Source: Pavona decussata
Taxonomy: Eukaryota
DNA: 64,000 nucleotides
Assembly (NCBI GenBank): GCA_977016875.1
Contig: CDRNST010000318.1
Span: forward strand, 3,286,001 to 3,350,000
Reading direction: 5' to 3'
The position numbers and the translations under genes were made by a program. Positions 12,151-45,070 of the stretch are shown here, one piece after another. Below the pieces are notes generated by a model. It worked only from the letters and a program-made list of their open reading frames with translations, did no database searches and was not told the origin of the DNA. Every line of letters starts with the position of its first letter. Position 1 is the first letter of the stretch.

Positions 12151-13129
12151 AATTTTTTCAAGCAAAATAAAGATTAAAATAAAATGAAATGAAAAACAGA
12201 GTTCTAGGCAGCAACAAAATTCCCGCCATCTTGAAAGTGTTTGCAACAGCAACCAGGCCTCTCAGCCTCGGTTTCGGGTTATAAGAATGTGTGACAACCT
12301 CCGTGACAGCTGGAAACTTATAGACTGCAAGCAGTCCCTCTCTGGATAGTTGAGAGGTCGCGCGAAATAGCCGAGCGCGAAAAAAACTGGAGCAAACGAG
12401 CGGTGATTAGATCTTTCACAGATCCTGCGTATACTTGCAGCATTTTCGTTGTGCGGTTCCTTACAGATTGTTCAGCAGCTGAAAATTATGGGAGTACCCC
12501 CCCCCCCCCCCGGGCCTACGACTGACCTGTTGCAGGCGTTCACATACAGCAAACGACAGAAATGACCATGTTTACCCTGCATTTACCAGTCGCTGTTTTC
12601 AGTCTCTCTAAATTGAGTAGTTTAGTGTATCAAAGGTCAGAATTGCGCTATTCCCATTTATGAACTAAGTGTTTGGTTTTTCAAGCAAACTTAAACGCAA
12701 ATCTCACATTTACCGTTTGCCCGTAAATAGGGGATTCTAAATCCCCTGGTCTAATCTTTCTGTAAAAAAAAAAAAAGAAGTATTTTGCGAGCGGGAAAAA
12801 GCAAGGAAAGACTCGGAGGCCCGGGGGGGGAGGGGTTAGTCCCCTTTCTGGCTGTACGGGGACGTGCCGCTGGTACGCGAGTCTGTCCTGGACCCGTCCT
12901 AAACAGGGTATGGTTGCAAGACTGTCGTTGAGTATTTGGCAATCCGAAATCAGAGACGTTTATCTGTATTTATTTCAGTGAACAATGCTTCACGTCAATT
13001 GTTTCCACCTAAGGTTCACCGCTGAAATTTTGGGATTTTTCGCCATCACTTCTAGGTAATACATTATTTTATCTGAAAATACAAAACTGAATGCAAGGCT
13101 GGCACTACGGCAAAGGGCAGATTTATTGG

Positions 13130-13172
13130 TGGCCAATATTTCGACTAATAGAATTAGTCTTCCTCAGGGCCA
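13130..13172 (-). ncRNA. Inverted copy of the minimal hammerhead ribozyme
   Basis: Reverse complement of 14525-14567, inside the left inverted pseudo-LTR. Confidence 0.78.
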
Positions 13173-13535
13173 GAGCTATACTGAAGGAAAATATAATAAC
13201 GGCTCCTTAAATTAAAGTTTGAAAAATACATGGAAAAACATGATTGGCTAACACATGATATGATGACAGCGTATTTGTAAATATGAGATAACAAAAATAT
13301 ACTAACGGCTCCTAAAATTAAAATTTGAAAAAATATATGCAAAAAAATGATTGGCTAATACATGACATGAAGACAGCGTTCTTGTAAATATGAGATAACA
13401 AAAATATAGAAGTGTATAATCAAGGTTCAGCGTTCGTTTTTCCTGTTAATGCCTTCTGGAGATAACGTTTTCCCTCTATGAATTAGAAAAGCCTCGCGTG
13501 CCTTCCTAACAAAACGAGGCTATAAAGACCGTTTT

Positions 13536-14270
13536 GTGAAAGAACAAATCTTAAGAGCCAAACAGATACCCAGAAGTGAGACATTACAGGAACATAATCA
13601 TGATAAAGATAAATCCAACACCCCAGTCCCCTTCACCATCACTTATAACCCAGCACTACCCAATATCCAAGAAATACTTCACAGGAAACAACCTATTCTT
13701 AACTCCACAGATCGCCTTCAAAAAATATTCAAAGATAAACCATTCATCGCTTACCGTCGTTCACCAAACCTTCGCGACCTTTTGGTTCGAGCAAAACTAA
13801 AGAACCCTAACACGACACCCAAGCTCACCTCTGGCACTTTCCGCTGCAACTCCACTCATGGATGTCTCACTTGCCCTTACATTGACGATGCAAGAACTTC
13901 GTACACTTTTAGCAACACCGGCGAAACAAGACAAATAAAACAACATATAACCTGTAATTCTACTAACCTTACATATATGATTGAATGTAAAAAATGTAAA
14001 AAACAGTATATAGGGGAAACCAAACGCACGATCCGTGAAAGGTTCACAGAACACAGACAAGCGACAAACAACCCACATCACGCCAACTCCACAGCAGCAG
14101 TCCCTACACACTTCAACTTACCAGGTCACTCTTCTGCGGACATGCGACTTATCCCTCTCGAACTACAACCCACCATCAATGCCTCCCGCCGGAAGGCACG
14201 CGAGGCTTTTCTAATTCATAGAGGGAAAACGTTATCTCCAGAAGGCATTAACAGGAAAAACGAACGCTGA
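13536..14270 (+). CDS. Penelope-like element C-terminal ORF fragment: RT thumb end, Cys-rich linker and GIY-YIG endonuclease (RT core lost by 5' truncation)
   Basis: LTKRGY just upstream; AYRRSPNLRDLLVRAK; CNSTHGCLTC; NLTYMIECKKCKKQYIGET (GIY-YIG); RFTEH..THF; EAFLI..TLSPEGIN. The ORF is uninterrupted. Confidence 0.85.
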   Translation: MKEQILRAKQIPRSETLQEHNHDKDKSNTPVPFTITYNPALPNIQEILHRKQPILNSTDRLQKIFKDKPFIAYRRSPNLRDLLVRAKLKNPNTTPKLTSGTFRCNSTHGCLTCPYIDDARTSYTFSNTGETRQIKQHITCNSTNLTYMIECKKCKKQYIGETKRTIRERFTEHRQATNNPHHANSTAAVPTHFNLPGHSSADMRLIPLELQPTINASRRKAREAFLIHRGKTLSPEGINRKNER

Positions 14271-14524
14271 ACCTTGATTATACACTTCTATATTTTTGTT
14301 ATCTCATATTTACAAGAACGCTGTCTTCATGTCATGTATTAGCCAATCATTTTTTTGCATATATTTTTTCAAATTTTAATTTTAGGAGCCGTTAGTATAT
14401 TTTTGTTATCTCATATTTACAAATACGCTGTCATCATATCATGTGTTAGCCAATCATGTTTTTCCATGTATTTTTCAAACTTTAATTTAAGGAGCCGTTA
14501 TTATATTTTCCTTCAGTATAGCTC

Positions 14525-14567
14525 TGGCCCTGAGGAAGACTAATTCTATTAGTCGAAATATTGGCCA
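14525..14567 (+). ncRNA. Minimal type I hammerhead ribozyme in the Penelope pseudo-LTR
   Basis: TGGCC-CTGAGGA-A-GACTAAT(TCT)ATTAGTC-GAAA-TA-TT-GGCCA: stem I TGGCC/GGCCA, CUGANGA core, 7-bp stem II, GAAA, loopless palindromic stem III (ATAT), AUU cleavage triplet. Confidence 0.8.
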
Positions 14568-14745
14568 CCAATAAATCTGCCCTTTGCCGTAGTGCCAGCC
14601 TTGCATTCAGTTTTGTATTTTCACGTTCAAGTGACGCCTGACACGAGGTCTTTCACAAGAGAGATCCGGCAAAATTACCAGCAAGTTTAATTCCTGCGTT
14701 GTGTGGACCTCTGCATTCAAAAGTTTCTTATTTTATCTGTTGTGA

Positions 14746-21514: not shown

Positions 21515-24088
21515 ATGAAGAGAGCAGGGATACACCTTCTCTTCAAACCTTCCCGCTTATTAAATCAGCTCAAAACAGATTTTAATCGTACATCAATTGG
21601 ACGTATCTCAGCGTGCAGGCTGAGCAGTACGGCTGTAAAAGTTCTGTCCCCAGAGGAGGCTCGGATGGAAAACTGGCGGCGGCGTGTTGATTTGGCGGCG
21701 TGTTATCGTGGCTTCGAAAGGTATGGCTTACATGAAGGGGTATGTAATCATCTGAGCATGATGGCTCCGGCGGCAAATGGTAAAGGAGAAGTCATGATGC
21801 TGATCCCATATGGATTGCATTGGAGTGAGGTATGAAAAACGTTCATGCACACGAATATCGCTTTATCCTGTTTACTGGAGTGAGAATTGAGAAAGAAATA
21901 CAGATCAACTTTACAAAGTTGTTAGAGTGCTTGCTTTGCGTTTACGTTTGCTTATAAATTCTCATGTAGATTTAACCAGCAGCCGGCAGTATTTTTAGGT
22001 TGTGGATGTGCGAAAACCACCCCAACAAAAATTGGCCATAAATGAATAGGGTCCTAACTGCTAGCTGGTTTCATTTGTCTTTCAGGTTAAAGCGTCGTCA
22101 TTTGTGGGTCTGAACGAGAAGGGTGAAGTAGTTGAAGGAACAGGAGAGGCTGAGATTTCAGCGTCAACTATTCACCGCGGAGTTCATCGGGCGCGGCCAG
22201 ACGCAGTGTGTGCGTTTCACCTACACCCGCCATATTGCACAGCCATAGGTAGAAAAGTTTTGCACCTTTCAGGTGTTGTGAATATAGCTGTTTTTAGGCA
22301 AATTGTCGCTCTTCTTTCAGACCGATTCTACACTACGACAAGAAAAATCTATAGTAGACAGAGAATTCGAATACGAGGGAGGTGACAGGAATAGGGCTTT
22401 AATGAGCAGACTATATCTTATAATTGTGCTTTTCTGTATTAGGATCCTTGAAAAATCCCAAACTTGCAATGTGCCACCAGAATTCATGTTACTTTTATAA
22501 TCGCATCGCTTACGATCGAGACTACAGTGGGCTCAGCTTGGATGATGAAGAGGGCATGCGCACAGGGAAGCAACTTGGAGACAAGTCGGTACTGTTCATG
22601 TGTAATCACGGGGTACTGGTTGTGGCGGAAACCGCTGCCAGAGCGTTTGATGATGTCTACTATTTAGAGCGTGCCAGTATGACGCAGGTAACTAATATTA
22701 CTATACACGGTTGTCAGGGAAACAAAGTCTTTGTAATTGAAGAAATTCTATCGGTCTGTCTGTCTGTTTTTGGTCTTATCAAGTGAGTTGATATTGTAAT
22801 TTGGTCACTGTCAAGAGATTCGAGAGCTGACGTTTAGTGCCTGTCTGTCTGTCTGTCGGTCGGTCCGCCTACCTGTCTCTCTCTTTTGTCCTCCCTCCCC
22901 CCCCCCCCCCTCCCTCTCTCCTTCTACTTTACAAATTTGTAACACGGGTGCAACAGGTTCAAATTATTCCAATGTAGAGTTACTAAGTAATTTATTCAGT
23001 AAGTGTACCTTAAACCCTCGTGATATTATTAAGTGAACACCATTCATTAGTGGCCAGCTGGTGCAAGCCACTCTAACGTACAGTTGACGTCTTTCCGCCA
23101 GACGTAAGCCGCAGAACGACTTCGTGATATTAAAAATTCATTTAAAAGCAGGAAAGGGAAAAAAACAAATATACAACGACGTTAAATATCCGTTAAATAA
23201 AGGCTGGTATTGCGCATGTTCTCGTTAGTTCTCGCACTCGAAACACGTTTATGAGCACCTCATTTTCGGTTCATCTTTCAATTTTTCGATTTTACTTCAG
23301 AGATGGGACATTCAATTAATAAGCGACCAAGTTTACAAGCACGAGAATTTGAAGTGCAGCGATTTATTATTGTAAGGAAATCTTGCTTTTATTTGCCATT
23401 TTTAAAGTACTCAGAATCATCAAGTCGTAACTTAAATATTGACATTGTAGAAAAATGTTGTCCTAGAAATGGGCTTGATTGAAACAAATGAATTGTTTAT
23501 GTGTAACAACGAAAAATATCAAACGGCCAAGAAAGGTTTAGAGATGAGTAAATCAATACTTTTTTTGTATGCGTGTTTAATCTGCTAACCTATGAGCTTG
23601 ATATCTTCTATGTTATGTGAAATATAAAATGTGATGGTATATTTCCAGCCTGGGGAATGAATGAGAATGATGTATTATTCTAGAAATTGACACAGGCATG
23701 CTCGGAAAAAAGAAATCCGAGTGCTTCTATCAGGAGTCGAACCTAAGACCTTCCGAGTCTCCTGTAGCTCAGTGGTAGAGCATCCGAACTAGTAATCGGA
23801 AGGTCTTAGGTTCGACTCCTGATAGGAGCACTCAGATTCCTTTTTTCCGAGCATTCCTGTGTCACTTTCTAGAATAATACATCACTCTCATCTTCTATGT
23901 TATTTCTCACATTTCCACAGGTCCTGGCCATGTCAACAGGACAAGAATTGTTTGAGTTACCTGACGAAGTAGCAAGGCAAACGTATGAGGGCTTTGACGG
24001 CCAAGGTCAAAGGCAAATATACTGCGATGCTCATTTCGATAGCATCAAACGAGTTCTTGCAAAAGAGTGCCCAGACTACATGGAATGA
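21515..24088 (+). CDS. Class II aldolase/adducin N-terminal domain protein (Zn-binding, PA3430/NovR-like), ~296 aa, with a probable mitochondrial presequence
   Basis: Exons 21515-21829, 22086-22248, 22443-22687 and 23921-24088 join in frame. Motifs: RVDLAACYR..GLHEGVCNHLS, PYGLHWSEVKASS, IHRGVHRARPDAVCAFHLHPPY (HxH), LFMCNHGVLV, YYLERA. The N-terminus is R/K/S/L-rich and acid-poor. Confidence 0.9.
23617..23889 (+). mobile_element. tRNA(Thr-AGT)-like-containing short retroposon with an inverted 5' duplication, in aldolase intron 3
   Basis: 14-bp TSD ATCTTCTATGTTAT (23603-23616, 23890-23903); 95-bp inverted arms 23662-23756 / 23796-23890; cloverleaf at 23758-23830 with A box TAGCTCAGTGG and B box GGTTCGACTCC. 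Confidence 0.8.
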
Positions 24089-24865
24089 GCGTAAGGAATA
24101 TCTGCGGCGTATTCAGATACAACTATGCGCAAATACTTTCTATAAACCGACCATGAAAGGACCTCTTCAAAAACATAGCAGCAATTTACAGCCGGATCTT
24201 AAAGTGGATCGTAATGAGCAGTATACTTTATAAAAAAAAATTTAAAAAGTGGAAGGTTAATGAAACAGCTGAAAATGTGTTTTATATGATTTGGCCTTAG
24301 TTAGACCAGTCAACATGACTAACCTTCGTGAAAAGTCAGTTTTTACTAGCCGAAATATTAGGCAAACTTTTCAGCTCTTTGATCAGCCTTGGATTTTTCA
24401 AAACTGCCAAATATACTATCATGAAATTTCAAAACCGGATGAAAAAACATCTGCCTGTTTCTATTGGGCTCTTCATTAGAATGTCAATAAAGATCACTGA
24501 CGAATTGAACACTTCAGGTACTGAGAATTCGACTTTGCAATGAAAATCAGTTAAATAATGTATGAGGTTTTCCAATTGGCTTGTATGTGTGTTTTGGGCA
24601 ATAAAATGAGGGCTTCTTTTTGTAGTGTTGGGACTGATTTCATGACAATTACCCAGTGCACTGAAGTTTATATGGATTTGCCAGTTCTAGCGTAAGCTGG
24701 ACAGGAGAAAACGAAACGTTAACACGTACAAAAATACGGTAAACCTTGCCACTAATGATGCCGAGTCGAGTCAGAGCCCAACGGACTGGACATACTCTCT
24801 GAATGAGAGATAAGCGTTGTCACCATTTTACGTCAACTTCAGTTTGTATTTTCACAGATCGACAG

Positions 24866-25049
24866 GCGTCATATGTGGGTTGAGTTTGTTGTTGGTTCCC
24901 GTCTTTGCTCTGAGAGGTTTTTCTCCGGGTACTCTGGTTTTCCCCTCTCCTCAAAAACCAACATTTCTAAATTCCAATTCGATTTGGAAAGTGTCTCCAA
25001 TTAGAGTTCTGCGCTAAAGACATTGACACTTGAATGAAGTGATTTATTT
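24866..25049 (+). mobile_element. 5'-truncated copy of the same V/Meta-like SINE
   Basis: Aligns with 44105-44270 (GTCATATGTGGGTTGA..GAGAGGTTTTTCTCCGGGTACTC..CTGCGCT). Confidence 0.75.
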
Positions 25050-32800: not shown

Positions 32801-35800
32801 TTTGTAAAGGTAAGTCATCTCCATAAACTATTTGAAGGTTTGGTTTAAGATTTAAAGCAGTGGGTTGACTATAAACCATTTCTAATCAAGTTGTATCAGT
32901 TGCCATGTGAAATCAGTTCTGTGGTTAATGTGCAAGGACATCCTACTTCCTGGGAGTGGTTTCCTCTCTTCCAGCTGAACCCTTGTTGTTTTATGATATA
33001 AAGCGCATGACTGTTGACATGTTAAATTATTTTAAAAAAGAAAATTCAGTGACGAAATTAGTAAACAAATATCACAGGAAGATCAGTCACAAAACAAGGA
33101 GGTTCAGAACAAAAAAAAGCATACAATGTTCATTTTTGGCTTCTCAAGGCTTGATATTTACTATTTTCTTTTTCTTCGTCTTCAAAAATTGAAGGGGTGC
33201 CTGGAAAAAAGCCCGTAGTGACTTCTGATAAATAGCTAGATTCTCCTTCCAAATTTCATTGTATTCGCTTGTGAAACAAAAGGAGAATTTGACCTTACAT
33301 CAAAAGTCACTTAGGGCCTTATTCCACACACCCCTTCAATTTAAAATTGCAACTCAGTTTGGGGGTGTTTAATTTATTTGTAATAATGTTAGTCATCTTG
33401 TCTGAGTATATATTGCTGTCTATTTTTGCAGATTTGTGACTTTGGGCTTGCCCGTTCAGTCACAAGCATTACGCAAGAGGCTGGTGATCCTAGTTTAACT
33501 GATTATGTCGCCACTCGCTGGTATAGAGCACCAGAAATTCTCTTAGCATCTCCAAGGTAAATTAAACTTTCAATCATAACTTTTTATAGTGCATTATTCC
33601 ATGACCAGATTATCAAATCCTTGAATTGGAATTTGGAAATTTTGGTTTTTTGAGGAGAGGGGAAAACTGGAGTTAACCCGGAGAAAAACCTCTCAAAGCA
33701 AGGACGAGAACCAACAAGAAACTCAACCCACATGAGGCTGAGTCTGTCAATCATGCGTAGGGCCAGTTATAATTATAATGTCTCATGCTTTAAGGGATAT
33801 CTTTGTCATTGTGACTTGTACTCTAATGTTTTGTATGTTCATAATGGTGAAGCTAATTAATCGTTAACATTAAAAAATAAAAGTCATGCACTGTCGTGAT
33901 GAAGATATTTTCATGATGCTTCTTGCAGATCATTATAAATACTTAGTTTTTTTATGCTGTTCCTTTTTTGTTATCAGGTACACAAAGGGGGTTGATATGT
34001 GGTCACTGGGATGCATTTTAGGAGAAATGCTTTTAGGTAAGTACAAACCAGCATGGTGTGTCTTCATAAATAATTCAAAACAGAACTTTTTTATGAGTTA
34101 TACAATTATGTCAGATAACTGTTGTATTTTACAATTTAATTGTCCCTGAAAAGATCACAACCCCTCCATCCCTAGATGTCCATCCCTTAGTCAAAACCAT
34201 TTTTCTTTGTGTTGCAGGAAAACCACTTTTCCCAGGCACATCAACATTAGATCAGATTGAGAGAATTATGACAATAATTCCCACTCCATCAAGACAAGGT
34301 AAGCTAAGGAATCTTAATAATATTAATTAACTGATTTTTATTACAGTTTCAAGGGGCAGTTTCATGCCAAAGGCATGGTTTGATTGTGATCAGTTGCATC
34401 ATTAAGCTTTTCTTTTCATTTTCTCATCATTAGACATAGACAGTATCAAGTCACAGTACAGTTCATCAGTGCTGGACAGAATGGCATTAAAACCCAAGAA
34501 AAGCCTTGAAGAGATCATACCTAATGCGCCACCGGACGGCATAGATCTCTTGAAGAAGTTACTTCAGTTTAACCCTGATAAGCGACTGACAGCAGAGCAG
34601 GCTCTAAGTCATCCATTTGTAGCAAGGTTCCACAACCCTGATGAAGAGCCTTCAATGGATTATGATGTGATTCCTGCACTGGATGATGATGTTCAGTTGA
34701 GTGTAGAAGAGTATCGAGTAAAACTTTATGAGGTGGGTACAGTTGACACAAGATTATACTATCAACACATTCATGAAGTTACTTCGAATGAGTGGATGCA
34801 AGTACCATCCATTAGTAGCTAAATTTGGGCTTCCAATGACTTGCTGCATTGAGTCACTCTGCAATGAACATTACAGTCCAGCATTACAAGCCCATTTGTT
34901 TTACGGTTCTAAGTTCAATTATTCAGTTTTGTCAATGTATATTCCCTCACCTATTTCTTCAAAGCATACTCCAGAATGTCTTTCTATCATGAAAAGAAAC
35001 ATTAATTTTACCAGAATAGGTCATGGTCATGGTTGAATAGAAACCAGCTTACAGGGCAGGCCAAAATGGAAATTGAAATATTTCAAACATTTCCTGCTCA
35101 AGTCTCAATGCTGCAGTTACTATTTTATGTAAATTGTGATAATGCAAACATGGCCTACTGTTTTTTTAATATTGTGCATTCTTTTGTATATAGAGCATCA
35201 TCCAGAAGAAAACTAACATTAGAAGACAGAGAAGGGAGATTTTCCTTCAGGATCACAGGCAGAAACAAGCACAGGCTGTTGAACAAGCAAGACAACAGGA
35301 ACACCAACCACTGAAGCAAGTTGAGAACTACCCACACACATCACCAATCAATGCACAGGCCAACCAGCATGTGCATAGCTCACCAGTCAAGTCCTCAGTG
35401 AATAAAAGTGACGGTGTGACAGTTGCATTTGGTAGAACTACAAAGATTCAGCACCAACGATCACCTTCTGCTGGAAAAAGTATGGTCAGAAGACATAGTT
35501 TGGAAAATGACAGCGTAAGTAGCATTTTGTGGGTGTATGTCATAGGAATACCATTCTTCAGTAAATGGACACTGAGTTGTCAGTGACTTTCATCTTATTC
35601 TCAATAATTTGGACTATCAGTCCTGCTCCTAGCAGGTTGCCTGGGTGGGAGTTCAGCTGTGATATTATAATAGAAGCCAAAGAATATTGCAAAGAGAGTC
35701 CATTCTGGGTGGTGTTGAACCTGGAAAATACCTATTTTAGCTCAAGGCAAGAGGGTTAGGTTGTAAACAAACTGTCAGTGGTGCTGCATCAGTGGGGATT

Positions 35801-40800: not shown

Positions 40801-43800
40801 ACGGGTTTAATTTTGCAGCGGTTTTGTGTTATGGAATCTTCTTCTGTGTATCTCCTACACTTCTGGCAGAACTTTAGAGAAAGCAGCTTAAAAATGTTTA
40901 TTCATAACTTCGTTGCCTTTCTCGACCGCGTGTTCGCCTCTATAAATGCTAGTGGAGAATTTTACCTTCACTGAACTACAATCACGGATAAAAGTCTTGG
41001 GGTAACTCGACTTCTCTATTCGCTAGAGTAACTCTACTGTTCCCCTAACCCCCGCCCCTCTCTCACACATTGTTGATCCCGTGTATCCAAGCTTTGTCTC
41101 ACCACTGTAACTTGTCGGCCGACATTGGCAAAATATCGTTTGTACTGAATGAATTGAGCCCAGGCTGATTATTTACTATTAACTTACTGTGTGCCAATTG
41201 CCGTCGCTGTAGGATGCTTGAGCAGAGAACAGCTTCAAGATACCACCACCAGCACTGAAGCTACACGACACTTTACCATCTTCTAAATGACACTCTATAA
41301 AGTCCGCCTGGTTGTCATTGGCAGTGTATAACATAATGCCATTTGGATTGGAGGCACGGAATTCAAAGCTCAATTTAGTCCTGGGAAAACAGGCAACAAT
41401 AAACTACTGCTAATTGAATATGAATACTGCTACTGCTACTAAAAATGTTCTTAAAAAGGACACACCTAACGTTTTCGACTTTTCATTCATCTTCAGCTTG
41501 AAGGTGTCACGTAGGTTCAGCGTAGTAAACGTTTAGCGGAGAGCGTTTTATTTTAAACAAACATTTTTTAAGTTGGTGTCTTTTTACAGGAGTAGATTTT
41601 TGGGGGCCAGACAAAGGCAAATCTACTGAGTGCTTAAGAATCTCAAACTATACTTTTGAAAGAGTAAATAATTTTTTTGCATTACCAATCATAACTAAGT
41701 TTTCGAGAATTTTTCAATACGAAGCCTAGTTCTACGTTGCATCCCCTTCACTTGTGCTTCACTTGAGGTTTCATAAGCAGCGTATGCCTGTGGACAGGCT
41801 CCCAAGTGGAGTATAGGGCGAAGACTCCGTTCACTTATTTTTCTTTTCACCCTATTCTCCACTTCTGAGCCTGTTCATAAGCTATGTAGTCACGTGACTT
41901 ACTTCGAACCAATCAACTTGAGGAGCGGTCCTTCAATTTGATAAGCAGCATGGCTGTTAAGGTCGTGACCGAATCCCATCACTCCAAATAGCTGGGCTGG
42001 TGTCTCTGGCATTGGACACACTGGAGCTAGTGTTGTGGGGGTAGGGGTGGGGACAGGTTCTGGTGTTGTTGTGGGGATAGGGGTAGTCGACTCTTCAGGT
42101 GTGCTGGGGGTGGCTGTAGTTTGAATACTAGTGCTTGAGAATTCTTTGCTTGTTGTAGAATCTAAAAAAATGACACATTTGAAATAAGCAGGTTAGAAGT
42201 AGCGAGAATGTAGTGTCACTGTGTTCACTACAGCTGTCTGTCCTATGTTATACGCACAACAATTATTAAACTGCACATTGTGTTTGATATCCTGGTGTCA
42301 GCAGAGGCATGCCTGGAAACTGACAACAAACTTCCTGACCTATTCCTCAAGTGGAGAGAAGCAACAGTGTCAACTGATGATGTCCAACGCTCACGGAAAT
42401 ACTATAAACTTACGATTGACCACACATTTTCTTAGCCGCGTTCAATCCTGGACTTATCAGCTCAACTGTTTCAGTCGGCCAGCATCTTACTAGTTAGGAG
42501 TCTTGTCATTGTTTCATATATACAGCCTTAGAAACTGCTAATTTGAAATCTAACCGTCTCCAAAGTTTCTTTTCCCTAACCTAGGAAGTTCACTTGTTGC
42601 ATTTAGACTATGAACACAGTATGTGATCTATTTAATGAAGAAAACTTGGCCTCGTCGTGTTACAAATATTCTCGCAATAGTTCATCAAAAGGTGTTTAAT
42701 ACTTCTTGCTGCAATTGTTTTCTATTTTCTCCAATCTGTGTTGATGATCCTGATTTTCCACCCCGTCATCCATCTTAACCCTTTAACTCCTAATATCAAA
42801 GAATAAATTCTCCTATTTTGTCCCCATACTTTTCTTACAGAAGTACTAGAGAAAAGTCATTAAAAACTCAAGAAAATTCACCTTGGGTGATTATATCCTT
42901 AATTCTCATGACCTCAGGGATTGAATAAGCATTGAAAATGCAAGGAGAAATTTGATGCTGATCACTGTTGGGCTTTCTTACCTAGCTGACCGATTGGAGG
43001 CCGGGTTGGAGTTATCTCAATAAAAGGATCCTTGGGTGTAGGCTCCGAGTAATCTTCACCATCAAATATGACCGCATTTCTACCCTTGTACTCCATAAAG
43101 TTGAACAGTCTAAGACATAAACAGTGTTAAAAGTGAATAAATCGGTTTTAACAACTCCAAAAGAACGAACAACTGGGTTATAAACTATTCAACCATTGAG
43201 AATGATGTATTATTCTAGAAAGTGACGCAGGCATACTCAGAAAAAAGAAATCCGAGTGCTCCTATCAGGAGTCGAACCTAAGACCTTCTGCGGATTACTA
43301 GTTCGGATGCTCTACCACTGAGCTACAGGAGATTCGTGGGAGCTAAGGCCATTAAACTAGGTTCATGGGACAGACATCCTGCATACTGCTAGGATTTGAA
43401 TGTCGAACGTGTGGTACATGAAATAAAGGTGATGGTAAATTTCAAGCCTGGTGAATGAATGAGAACTATTCAACTATTTCTCACAGGATTGACTCCACTG
43501 TGGTTATTTTAAGTGCCCTGAAGTTCACCATTTTACTCACTGTTAACGTGCGCAAGTTAAACTGTGGCTTAAAGCAATTGAGGTCGTTTTAAACAGACAA
43601 TATCCAGAGAAAAAGAAAACTATACATACACGTCATCGAAAGTCAAGTCTCTGATAGATCCACCTTTCAGGGAATTAAGGATAACGGAGTTGAAATCGTT
43701 TGTCATAAATGTGACATCTTTGGGAATTCCTCCAAGATACATATCCTGTGTTGTTTGGATAACCTGCTGTGACTTGTCTTGGAAGACGCCAGTTTTTTCC

Positions 43801-45070
43801 TCATCATCCACATAAAGCATCAATCTAGGGGAAAAAATAGGTAACATGGCTCAAGACAATGTTCAAATGCTAGTGAGTGACGGATTTCTCATAAGAATTA
43901 CATGGTGATGAGAAAAGAGAACATCAAGCAGCTAGCAAAGCAAGGAAATGTCTGAGACGAGTGCATCTCACAGGATGGTGGACAATAGTGTAAAACACGA
44001 AGGTGCACCATTAAAACAGGGGCCCCATGAGGGGAGCAGGGAGGGCACAGTGGTGAGAGCACTCGCCACTCAGTAACTCGGCCCGGGTTCAATGCCCGGA
44101 CTCGGTGTCATATGTGGGTTGAATTTGCTGTTGGTTCTCGTTCTTTCTCCGAGAGGTTTTTCTCCGGGTACTCGGGTTTCCCCTAGCCTCAAAAACCAAC
44201 ATTTCCAAATTCCAATTAGATCTGGAAAATGTCCCCAGTTAGTGCTCTGCGCTTAATACATTGACAAACTAATTAATTAATTAAGACCAGGACTCTATCA
44301 ACTCATAGCGAACAAGACACTAGCAAGAAGGGTTCCTGTCGTTTCGCTGCAAATAGAAGTCGATTCGCTGCATTACCTGAAGTCGTTTCGCTTCGTCCAT
44401 AAGTCAATTCGCTTCAGCCTGAAAGCTAGTATCAAAACAAAACCCAGTCTGGCATCGCAGAGGTTATAGGTTCGAATCCCGTTCAAGCCTGAATTTTTTT
44501 AGGCTTTCTTTTCGCAACTGCTTAAGTTGCGTAAATATTTCTTCTATTTAATAGCACTTACGTTAAGCCATCCTTGCGAACGGTAACGAAATGCCATTTG
44601 CCATCATTATATTGCTTGTCAGTCTGTAATGTTAGTGGCACACTTCCAGGATTGACTTGAAATGTCACCTTGCCTTCAACCACGCCCAAAACAATAAATT
44701 CTTTCTGAAATTCATTAAACACAGGTTACTATCACTAACTTGAATAAAGCTGCTTTTCAGTAGTATGGTTACAGGGAGTGTTGTTAGCCCCTTCCTGGTC
44801 CAATAAAATCCCTCCCGTTTTCTAGACTCAGTGTCAATGCGTACTATAAAAACTGGATCACTGTACTGCAATTCCAGTGATTTGATTGGCTTAGCGGTCA
44901 TGGTCTATGAGCCATCTTACCATGACTGAGAAATAGCTAATTGTCTTCTGGTTGTTCTTGCAAGCGAAATCAGCAAGATCTATCAATATTTCTTGATTGT
45001 TTTAAATAAAACAATTACTCCACCAACGCTTGTTGGAAATGAGATGATAGATAGCCAACAACGCGCCACA

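Follow-up and report, generated by a model that had tools for sequence, protein, structure and literature searches.

No class of retrotransposons is understood less well than Penelope-like elements (PLEs) and, to our knowledge, in vitro reconstitution of the integration step is limited to one of these elements. PLEs characteristically leave partial tandem copies, a 5'-truncated copy in inverted orientation and, at one end only, a tail of 30-40 bp (PMC8557442). Reverse transcription can start at two internal sites in an AC-rich stem-loop, with both target strands cleaved and extended, and in vitro no difference between the strands was seen in the use of the start sites (PMC11167929). Metazoan retrozymes occur in animal genomes, including that of a stony coral (PMC7229834; bioRxiv 10.64898/2026.07.22.740005). 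The window analyzed here, a stretch of 64,000 nucleotides from the stony coral Pavona decussata, carries two copies of a short repeat with a tRNA-like module. The family is most likely a ribozyme-free passenger of Penelope-like retrotransposons and not an ordinary SINE. Its unit is a non-autonomous, non-coding retroelement, most likely inserted through the activity of the reverse transcriptase (RT) and GIY-YIG endonuclease of PLEs.

One of these copies, here the 43-kb copy, occupies 43198-43463 (minus strand) and is 266 nt long against a consensus of 259, to which it is 94% identical. A target site duplication (TSD) without strand frames it at 43183-43197 and 43464-43478; within these, AACTATTCAAC is duplicated exactly (43183-43193 and 43464-43474), and 15 nt match with one mismatch. 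The unit of about 263 bp with a TSD of about 15 bp that the first-pass annotation had described is borne out by these values. The copy is single-armed, starting at about unit position 1 and stopping at the 3' end that we call A (..CATCATTCTCA). A tRNA-like cloverleaf, Thr-AGT by anticodon, occupies positions 133-209 of the 266, i.e. mid-unit (43256-43332, minus strand), and both ARAGORN and Rfam (40.3 bits) recover it where it had been proposed. Its A and B boxes are intact, its pair 1-72 is mismatched, and its anticodon arm has a private insertion of 3-4 nt. Directly after the module comes a small hairpin (CTCGGA..CYGAG; 43235-43255, minus strand), whose loop holds the only T6 run of the unit, resembling a Pol III terminator. 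The upstream hairpin GACA..ATCCT.GCA-GTA-TGC.AGGAT..TGTC, also suggested earlier, is present at unit positions 61-96 (43369-43404, minus strand) as part of the minimum-energy fold. It sits 15 nt 3' of start site B and may be a protein-binding element. A 41-nt 'tail' segment (unit 6-46; 43419-43459, minus strand) lies between 3' ends A and B; it contains an A/C-rich stem-loop that the consensus has in intact form and the 43-kb copy in a weakened one.

The other insertion, at 23617-23889, consists of two inverted arms within a TSD of its own (ATCTTCTATGTTAT; left 23603-23616, right 23890-23903, no strand). Its left arm (23617-23756, minus strand) runs from about unit position 170 across the unit junction to 3' end B, and therefore carries the tail. 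The right arm (23754-23889, plus strand) runs from about position 129 to 3' end A and includes an intact tRNA-like module at 23758-23830 (49.6 bits). In the left arm, 3' end ..CATCATTCTCA is contiguous with TTCATTC.CCAGGCTGGAAAT.., with which the 43-kb copy begins, so that the end-to-start junction first noticed there is indeed continuous DNA. The claim that both insertions stop at ..TCTCA likewise holds, for the 43-kb copy and for the right arm of the 23.6-kb insertion.

Across the coral genome the family has a non-coding consensus unit with a period of 259 bp and 44% GC. A first-look search returned 2,389 candidates, with arrays of period 259, and pattern counts put the units at about 2,600 and the end-to-start junctions at about 2,460, for an estimated 1,500 or more insertions. 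The individual patterns matched 2,579 times for the hairpin segment, 2,583 times for the 3' segment and 2,464 times for the junction. As reversed control patterns had 0 matches each in the same genome, these thousands of matches are not due to chance. The family is young and its copies decay neutrally. This, and the choice of a second sample of copies by the hairpin sequence itself, leaves conservation or covariation of the hairpin uninformative. Among 19 public runs, all in the form of assembled contigs, sequence of the family and its go-back-263 joint are present in two RNA libraries; a DNA-like run has the same presence, joint and depth profile. One tRNA-like piece (L045, 90% identical) was considered as the head of a separate ordinary SINE and rejected, since a genome search identified what follows as an LTR belonging to an approximately 5.4-kb retrotransposon; the piece is a truncated older copy or an interrupted relative.

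The architecture of the insertions was established from about 37 inspected insertions together with coordinate lists. Whole composite insertions are framed by a single TSD of 11-15 bp, and within it head-to-tail multimers follow one another seamlessly with the constant period of 259. The 5' ends are variable (211-237, 118-129, 52-72 and 99-100). The 3' ends fall at two fixed points separated by 41 nt, A at unit position 5 (..TTCTCA) and B at position 46 (..CTTTCA); the end regions read ..CATCATTCTCA and ..CATTTCTTTCA, and copies abut the TSD directly at one or the other. At 64 loci chosen through a match to the 3' segment, units on the same strand are spaced by 259, and 18 loci are two-armed, all 18 with a minus arm followed by a plus arm, i.e. 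head-to-head; in this sample, the count of arrays and inversions called for in the first-pass annotation came out on its side. All 17 two-armed insertions with readable termini have one arm ending at A and the other at B (p = 8e-6 under a free 50:50 choice). Units and arms within one insertion have lineage variants in common, and such clonal units inside a single TSD indicate that the multimers formed at insertion. This requires a step from monomer to multimer, although a circle is not thereby proven. Snap-back synthesis was rejected as the source of the second arm, because either arm may be the longer and their lengths differ by several units.

Head-to-tail multimers in one TSD, a head-to-head inverted and 5'-truncated arm, and two fixed 3' ends that leave a tail on one side only make up the full signature of PLEs. 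An in-genome control is provided by four head-to-head insertions of an element that encodes an RT with a C-terminal GIY-YIG domain. These have the same form, with one arm ending at a first site, the other at a second site about 88 nt further, and TSDs of 9-12 bp. The comparison with host PLEs thus agrees with the earlier suggestion, as coding PLEs show the insertion signature of the family, and PLEs are abundant in this genome (933 GIY-YIG candidates). Under the PLE scenario, the enzyme would nick the target in a staggered fashion, some 11-15 bp apart, and each 3' OH would serve as a primer for the RT, which would begin copying the element RNA at one of two internal sites. Both cDNAs would then extend toward the RNA 5' end, often across several units, before joining in the middle of the insertion, and the 41 nt between the start sites would become the one-sided tail. 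The enzyme likely recognizes the A/C-rich stem-loop of the tail, as well as the hairpin that lies just 3' of site B. Since no strand difference was seen in vitro, the strict rule of one A and one B is not predicted in detail by the published model (PMC11167929).

Non-autonomous elements usually have a recognition region in common with their autonomous partner. In 30 + 8 PLE loci, which represent part of the families by their 3' halves, blastn and nhmmer found no similarity to the unit or to its non-tRNA part. The sole match in that search was a family copy that happens to adjoin a PLE, and searching the window in the same way gave no partner either.

The tRNA-like module belongs to the conserved core of the unit, but on its own it probably does not promote synthesis of a full template. 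In the consensus it spans positions 133-205 of 259, with a perfect A box at 140 and B box at 184, and its fold scores 49.6 bits. The T6 run lies at 216, at a distance of 11 nt behind the module, and thus precedes both sites at which reverse transcription starts. The first-pass annotation had envisaged a retrozyme-like or PLE-parasitic element in which a tRNA mimic supplies the Pol III promoter and possibly sites for RNase P and RNase Z. Of this proposal, the PLE parasite is supported. The module as the source of template RNA is not supported, as the T6 lies between it and both start sites. Nor is processing by RNase P and RNase Z, given that the 3' ends (5 and 46) and the scattered 5' ends miss the tRNA borders at 133 and 205. 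Its further observation that the unit has no hammerhead core was correct: CUGANGA is absent from either strand of the unit dimer. With Rfam at permissive thresholds, no ribozyme family was found up to E 10 in the monomer, the junction or a tetramer, and the same search of both window copies and a four-unit array returned only tRNA and chance microRNA-like matches. Rfam also found no hammerheads in six coding PLE loci, intended as a positive control but uninformative, as these loci hold 3' halves only.

If the tRNA-like module were a working substitute for the hammerhead, host tRNA-processing enzymes would release unit-length RNA, perhaps circular, for a PLE dimer to copy from two fixed starts, one per DNA strand; we think this improbable. 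In its fullest form such a retrozyme analogue would have RNase P and RNase Z cut multimers at the module, the product circularized by ligation and then copied by PLE RT in rolling-circle fashion. Metazoan retrozymes are circular and are thought to depend on PLEs (PMC7229834; bioRxiv 10.64898/2026.07.22.740005). Seamless period-259 multimers within one TSD, the monomer-to-multimer step implied by variants common to units and both arms, and the 49.6-bit consensus fold all speak for the analogue. However, cuts on both sides of the tRNA would delete it from the template, and all copies retain it; moreover, the scattered 5' ends avoid 133 and 206, and the 3' ends at 5 and 46 are distant from the tRNA. 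The products of RNase P and RNase Z carry a 5'-phosphate and a 3'-OH, unlike the ends used by RtcB-type ligation. Given also that unprocessed RNA was the main in vitro substrate of the PLE studied (PMC11167929), we regard the analogue as rather unlikely. If true, it would constitute a protein-processed, ribozyme-free route to the retrozyme life cycle.

The perfect A and B boxes and TSDs of 11-15 bp, which fit LINE endonucleases, would also suit an ordinary tRNA-derived SINE moved by a LINE (e.g. of the CR1 or L2 type), its arms arising from twin priming and its arrays from later local duplication. The pyrimidine-rich ..ATTCTCA end, too, is presumably comparable to the short repeats that terminate some LINEs on the 3' side. 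Yet the tRNA does not lie at the 5' terminus and none of the copy classes begins with it, no poly(A), microsatellite or LINE-like tail follows, and the internal T6 would stop Pol III. The clonal multimers inside a single TSD were formed at insertion, and ends 41 nt apart, one per arm in 17/17, are no twin-priming pattern. A LINE-mobilized SINE is accordingly very unlikely. The form of the insertions upholds the view of the first-pass annotation that the family differs from an ordinary tRNA-SINE; the end-to-start junction, with 2,464 matches, is not rare. Least probable of all, and barely credible to us, is a repeat spread at the DNA level, either a satellite moved through extrachromosomal circles or cargo of the Helitron/Helentron type. 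Short-unit tandem arrays dispersed over many loci would fit such an origin, and molluscs do have satellite-like arrays borne by Helentrons. However, Helitrons and Helentrons make no TSD, insert between A and T and have conserved 5' TC and 3' CTRR termini, and among about 37 insertions there were neither Helitron-type termini around arrays nor insertions without a TSD. The coral insertions have precise termini with TSDs of 11-15 bp and no carrier sequences adjoining the arrays, and their graded 5' truncation, head-to-head rule and fixed 3' ends fit target-primed reverse transcription.

As a short, young and abundant passenger, the coral family provides a readable record of PLE integration. In that record, every two-armed insertion examined used both of two fixed start sites, one on each strand, and multimers were clonal at birth. 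The family suggests that a hammerhead is unnecessary for riding PLE machinery, and that a tRNA-like module can join a non-SINE retroelement outside the LTR class. For annotation, the family yields about 2,600 spurious tRNA-Thr(AGT) calls in this coral, and many of the short inverted repeats near exons stem from it.

Among described elements, tRNA-derived SINEs resemble the coral unit in being short, non-coding and present in thousands of copies, with a tRNA-like sequence that has A and B boxes. The coral family differs from them in its internal tRNA, the lack of a LINE-type tail, the T6 right after the tRNA, and its multimeric and inverted insertions. With TRIMp3 elements (Cassandra, Helenus and Ajax; Kojima 2024, PMC10886601) it has in common that a non-SINE, non-autonomous element took a small-RNA-gene-like sequence into its repeated part. 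Those are LTR elements, however, with a PBS, a PPT and TSDs of 4-5 bp, none of which the coral unit has.

Metazoan non-LTR retrozymes (Cervera and de la Pena 2020, PMC7229834; Li et al. 2026 preprint) likewise consist of dispersed, non-coding tandem units that are short (170-400 bp) and low in GC, with TSDs exceeding 4 bp and a presumed dependence on PLEs. Retrozymes carry a type I hammerhead and have proven circular RNAs, whereas the coral unit, known here from DNA sequence, has a tRNA-like module and no hammerhead core. MRC1 of Chlamydomonas (Craig et al. 2021, PMC8557442) is similarly non-coding, with pseudo-LTRs, head-to-tail multicopy insertions and the PLE signature. Elements of the MRC1 type lack a small-RNA-gene module and have 3' ends in common with autonomous Chlamys elements that have been identified, whereas the coral unit has its tRNA-like core module and no partner among the 38 sampled PLE loci. 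The autonomous EN+ PLE Poseidon of Anolis (Frangieh et al. 2024, PMC11167929) has, like the coral unit, two internal RT start sites that define the tail and an A/C-rich stem-loop at the start region, and its tandem and inverted products arise with both DNA strands as primers. The coral unit differs from Poseidon in having neither an ORF nor a hammerhead, and its tail is 41 nt long. Unlike the in vitro work on Poseidon, the genomic record of the coral family shows a strict pairing of one A with one B in each two-armed insertion.

The 43-kb copy of the 259-bp family, a non-coding repeat with a central tRNA-like Thr(AGT) module, is a 266-nt element on the minus strand (43198-43463) flanked by a target-site duplication (TSD), AACTATTCAAC, at 43183-43193 and 43464-43474, which reaches 15 nt if one mismatch is allowed. 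Its tRNA-like cloverleaf with anticodon AGT (ARAGORN and Rfam, 40.3 bits) spans 43256-43332, or unit positions 133-209. Identity to the consensus is 94%, and an insertion of 3-4 nt in the anticodon arm is private to this copy. The other family insertion in the window, the 23.6-kb copy (23617-23889), consists of two inverted arms within its own TSD, ATCTTCTATGTTAT. In element sense, its left arm reads ..AATAATACATCATTCTCA and then immediately TTCATTCCCCAGGCTGGAAATATACCATCAC.., joining the 3' end of the unit to the unit start. The first-pass annotation, which had described a TSD-flanked unit, a tRNA-like part in mid-unit and a contiguous end-to-start junction, was right on all points.

Exon-like stretches on the minus strand (42960-43130 and 43620-43800) flank the 43-kb copy, which lies in the short gap between them and apparently shares the orientation of both; element RNA could thus come from host-gene read-through. 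Another interspersed repeat, containing ..GAGAGGTTTTTCTCCGGGTACTC.., has three copies in the window (24865-25044, 44104-44282 and, inverted, 33676-33733) that are 82-93% identical. Each tRNA-element copy has one of these ~1 kb to its right, a proximity that the differing TSDs and spacings suggest is coincidence. The window also has a 433-nt inverted repeat (13074-13506 and 14191-14623) with arms 100% complementary, 684 nt between them and direct repeats of 107 bp inside; this could reflect an assembly artefact or a foldback-type element that is very young.

A search of the 602-Mb genome gave 2,389 first-look candidates, and all those scored belong to the 259-bp family, the units of which run head-to-tail with a start-to-start period of 259 bp. 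With up to two mismatches tolerated, the hairpin segment matched 2,579 times, the 3' segment 2,583 times and the end-to-start junction 2,464 times, while the reversed control patterns gave 0 matches each. Given the similar counts for junction and segments, junction-spanning sequence is the rule in this genome; its rarity, which would have counted against the first-pass reading, is thereby set aside. Units within some arrays (as at sampled locus L015) are identical, indicating very recent activity, and other copies are only 84-92% identical with a somewhat different tail region, showing that the lineage is old as well.

About 37 insertions were inspected: 17 were among the top BLAST hits, and the other 20 were drawn from the pattern matches in the order of the contigs. 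A single TSD, 11-15 bp long, encloses the entire insertion, both arms included where there are two, and each insertion was therefore a single event. The unit has two fixed 3' ends, A (..CATCATTCTCA, unit position 5) and B (..CACATTTCTTTCA, unit position 46), separated by a tail of 41 nt. Single-armed insertions terminate at either, the 43-kb copy at A, while in all 17 two-armed insertions with readable termini one arm has A and the other B (probability 8e-6 if each arm chose freely). A stem-loop, GGAAAU / AUACCAUCAC / AUUUCU, is predicted in the tail at unit 21-42 and is present in the minimum-energy fold. Among 64 loci of an independent sample picked via the 3' segment, 18 are two-armed, every one of them minus-then-plus, the 5' ends facing inwards and the 3' ends lying on the outside, and same-strand neighbours are spaced at 259 bp. 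The 5' ends are variable, with some clusters (52-72, 99-100, 118-129 and 211-237) adjoining the hairpin and the tRNA-like part. This clustering (chi-square p 0.015, n = 43, with bins picked post hoc) is only suggestive, and would fit polymerase pausing on a folded RNA.

Sub-lineage variants are shared by all units within an array, and both arms usually have them, as with 116G>A in L023, 125C>T in L080, and 116G>A with 124T>A in L064. The two exceptions are a deletion at 209 in one arm of L070 and 98C>T in one unit of L022. For a mutation of one unit to appear in all units of a later array, the only route is through a monomer-to-multimer step, for which the candidates are rolling-circle copying of a circle, a series of template jumps, and a tandem-forming step intrinsic to integration by Penelope-like elements (PLEs).

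The tRNA mimic had been proposed to act as a Pol III promoter and as a site for RNase P/Z processing. In the consensus, the A box (position 140) and the B box (position 184) are both perfect, and pair 1-72 is mismatched. The unit has no run of four or more Ts apart from T6 at 216-221, which is 11 nt past the tRNA-like part and upstream of the next unit's two start sites. Transcription by Pol III would thus normally end after ~90 nt and miss the start sites, leaving the promoter role unsupported; full templates would require read-through or another polymerase. Processing fares no better, as the tRNA borders coincide with neither the 3' nor the 5' insertion ends, and a template from which RNase P and RNase Z had excised the tRNA would lack a part that all copies retain. 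Both roles may persist as minor routes. Host read-through transcription is a possible source of template, as many family copies, including both in the window, are in or beside genes. In public RNA runs, the family-to-flank depth ratio over assembled contigs resembles that of a DNA-like run, and the joint that goes back 263 is present in all runs, as genomic arrays alone would give. Contigs from 4/4 runs contain 4-18x more sequence related to unit 62-221, from hairpin to tRNA-like part, than to the tail region. The hairpin and tRNA segment thus appears to be a conserved core shared by a wider set of subfamilies and, on these contig sequences, the start-site region appears to be their variable part; such an arrangement would be in keeping with a partner that changed over time.

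The same genome gave 933 candidates for the GIY-YIG profile, and many coding PLE copies are paired minus-then-plus. In a young family encoding RVT_1 with GIY-YIG at the C terminus, four head-to-head pairs (L039/L044, L057/L058, L052/L053 and L041/L042, on contigs C78, C179, C67 and C240, respectively) have arms 98-100% identical. In all four, one arm extends to ..CTTCTYTTATCA and the other ~88 nt beyond, to ..GCTTGGACTTGA, and a TSD of 9-12 bp encloses each pair. These PLEs therefore match the 259-bp family in all three marks, with tail length as the only difference, and their insertions cleanly record PLE integration as it occurs in nature. Searches of 38 sampled PLE loci with blastn and nhmmer found no partner PLE for the 259-bp family. 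Elsewhere, minus-strand GIY-YIG matches at a 2,833-bp period (G000:C1115:1602-7537, on a small 9-kb contig) mark a short PLE arrayed head-to-tail. At L045, positions 2401-2760 (G000:C50:2145842-2146201) and another copy 5.4 kb from it represent the LTR of a ~5.4-kb retrotransposon; many loci have copies of this LTR paired at a distance of ~5.3 kb. The retrotransposon at L045 interrupts an older copy of the tRNA-like element adjoining a PLE.

As its insertion form is that of published PLEs and of the coding PLEs in the same genome, the 259-bp element is likely a PLE parasite, as the first-pass annotation had suggested. In the searchable literature, PLE passengers are hammerhead-bearing retrozymes (PMC7229834; bioRxiv 10.64898/2026.07.22.740005) and pLTR-derived elements of algae (PMC8557442), and tRNA-like modules in non-SINE retroelements are known from LTR elements (PMC10886601); we found no tRNA-bearing, ribozyme-free PLE passenger there. 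Published PLE insertions are partial tandems, often with an inverted 5'-truncated copy in front and a tail of 30-40 bp, often at a single end only (Craig et al., PMC8557442). Naiad PLEs are without canonical hammerheads, and non-autonomous Chlamys elements give multicopy head-to-tail insertions (PMC8557442). In vitro, the enzyme of a Poseidon element cleaves and extends both DNA strands (Frangieh et al., PMC11167929). [quoted passage not shown] The 259-bp family agrees with these published features on all counts, including the 41-nt tail with its stem-loop.
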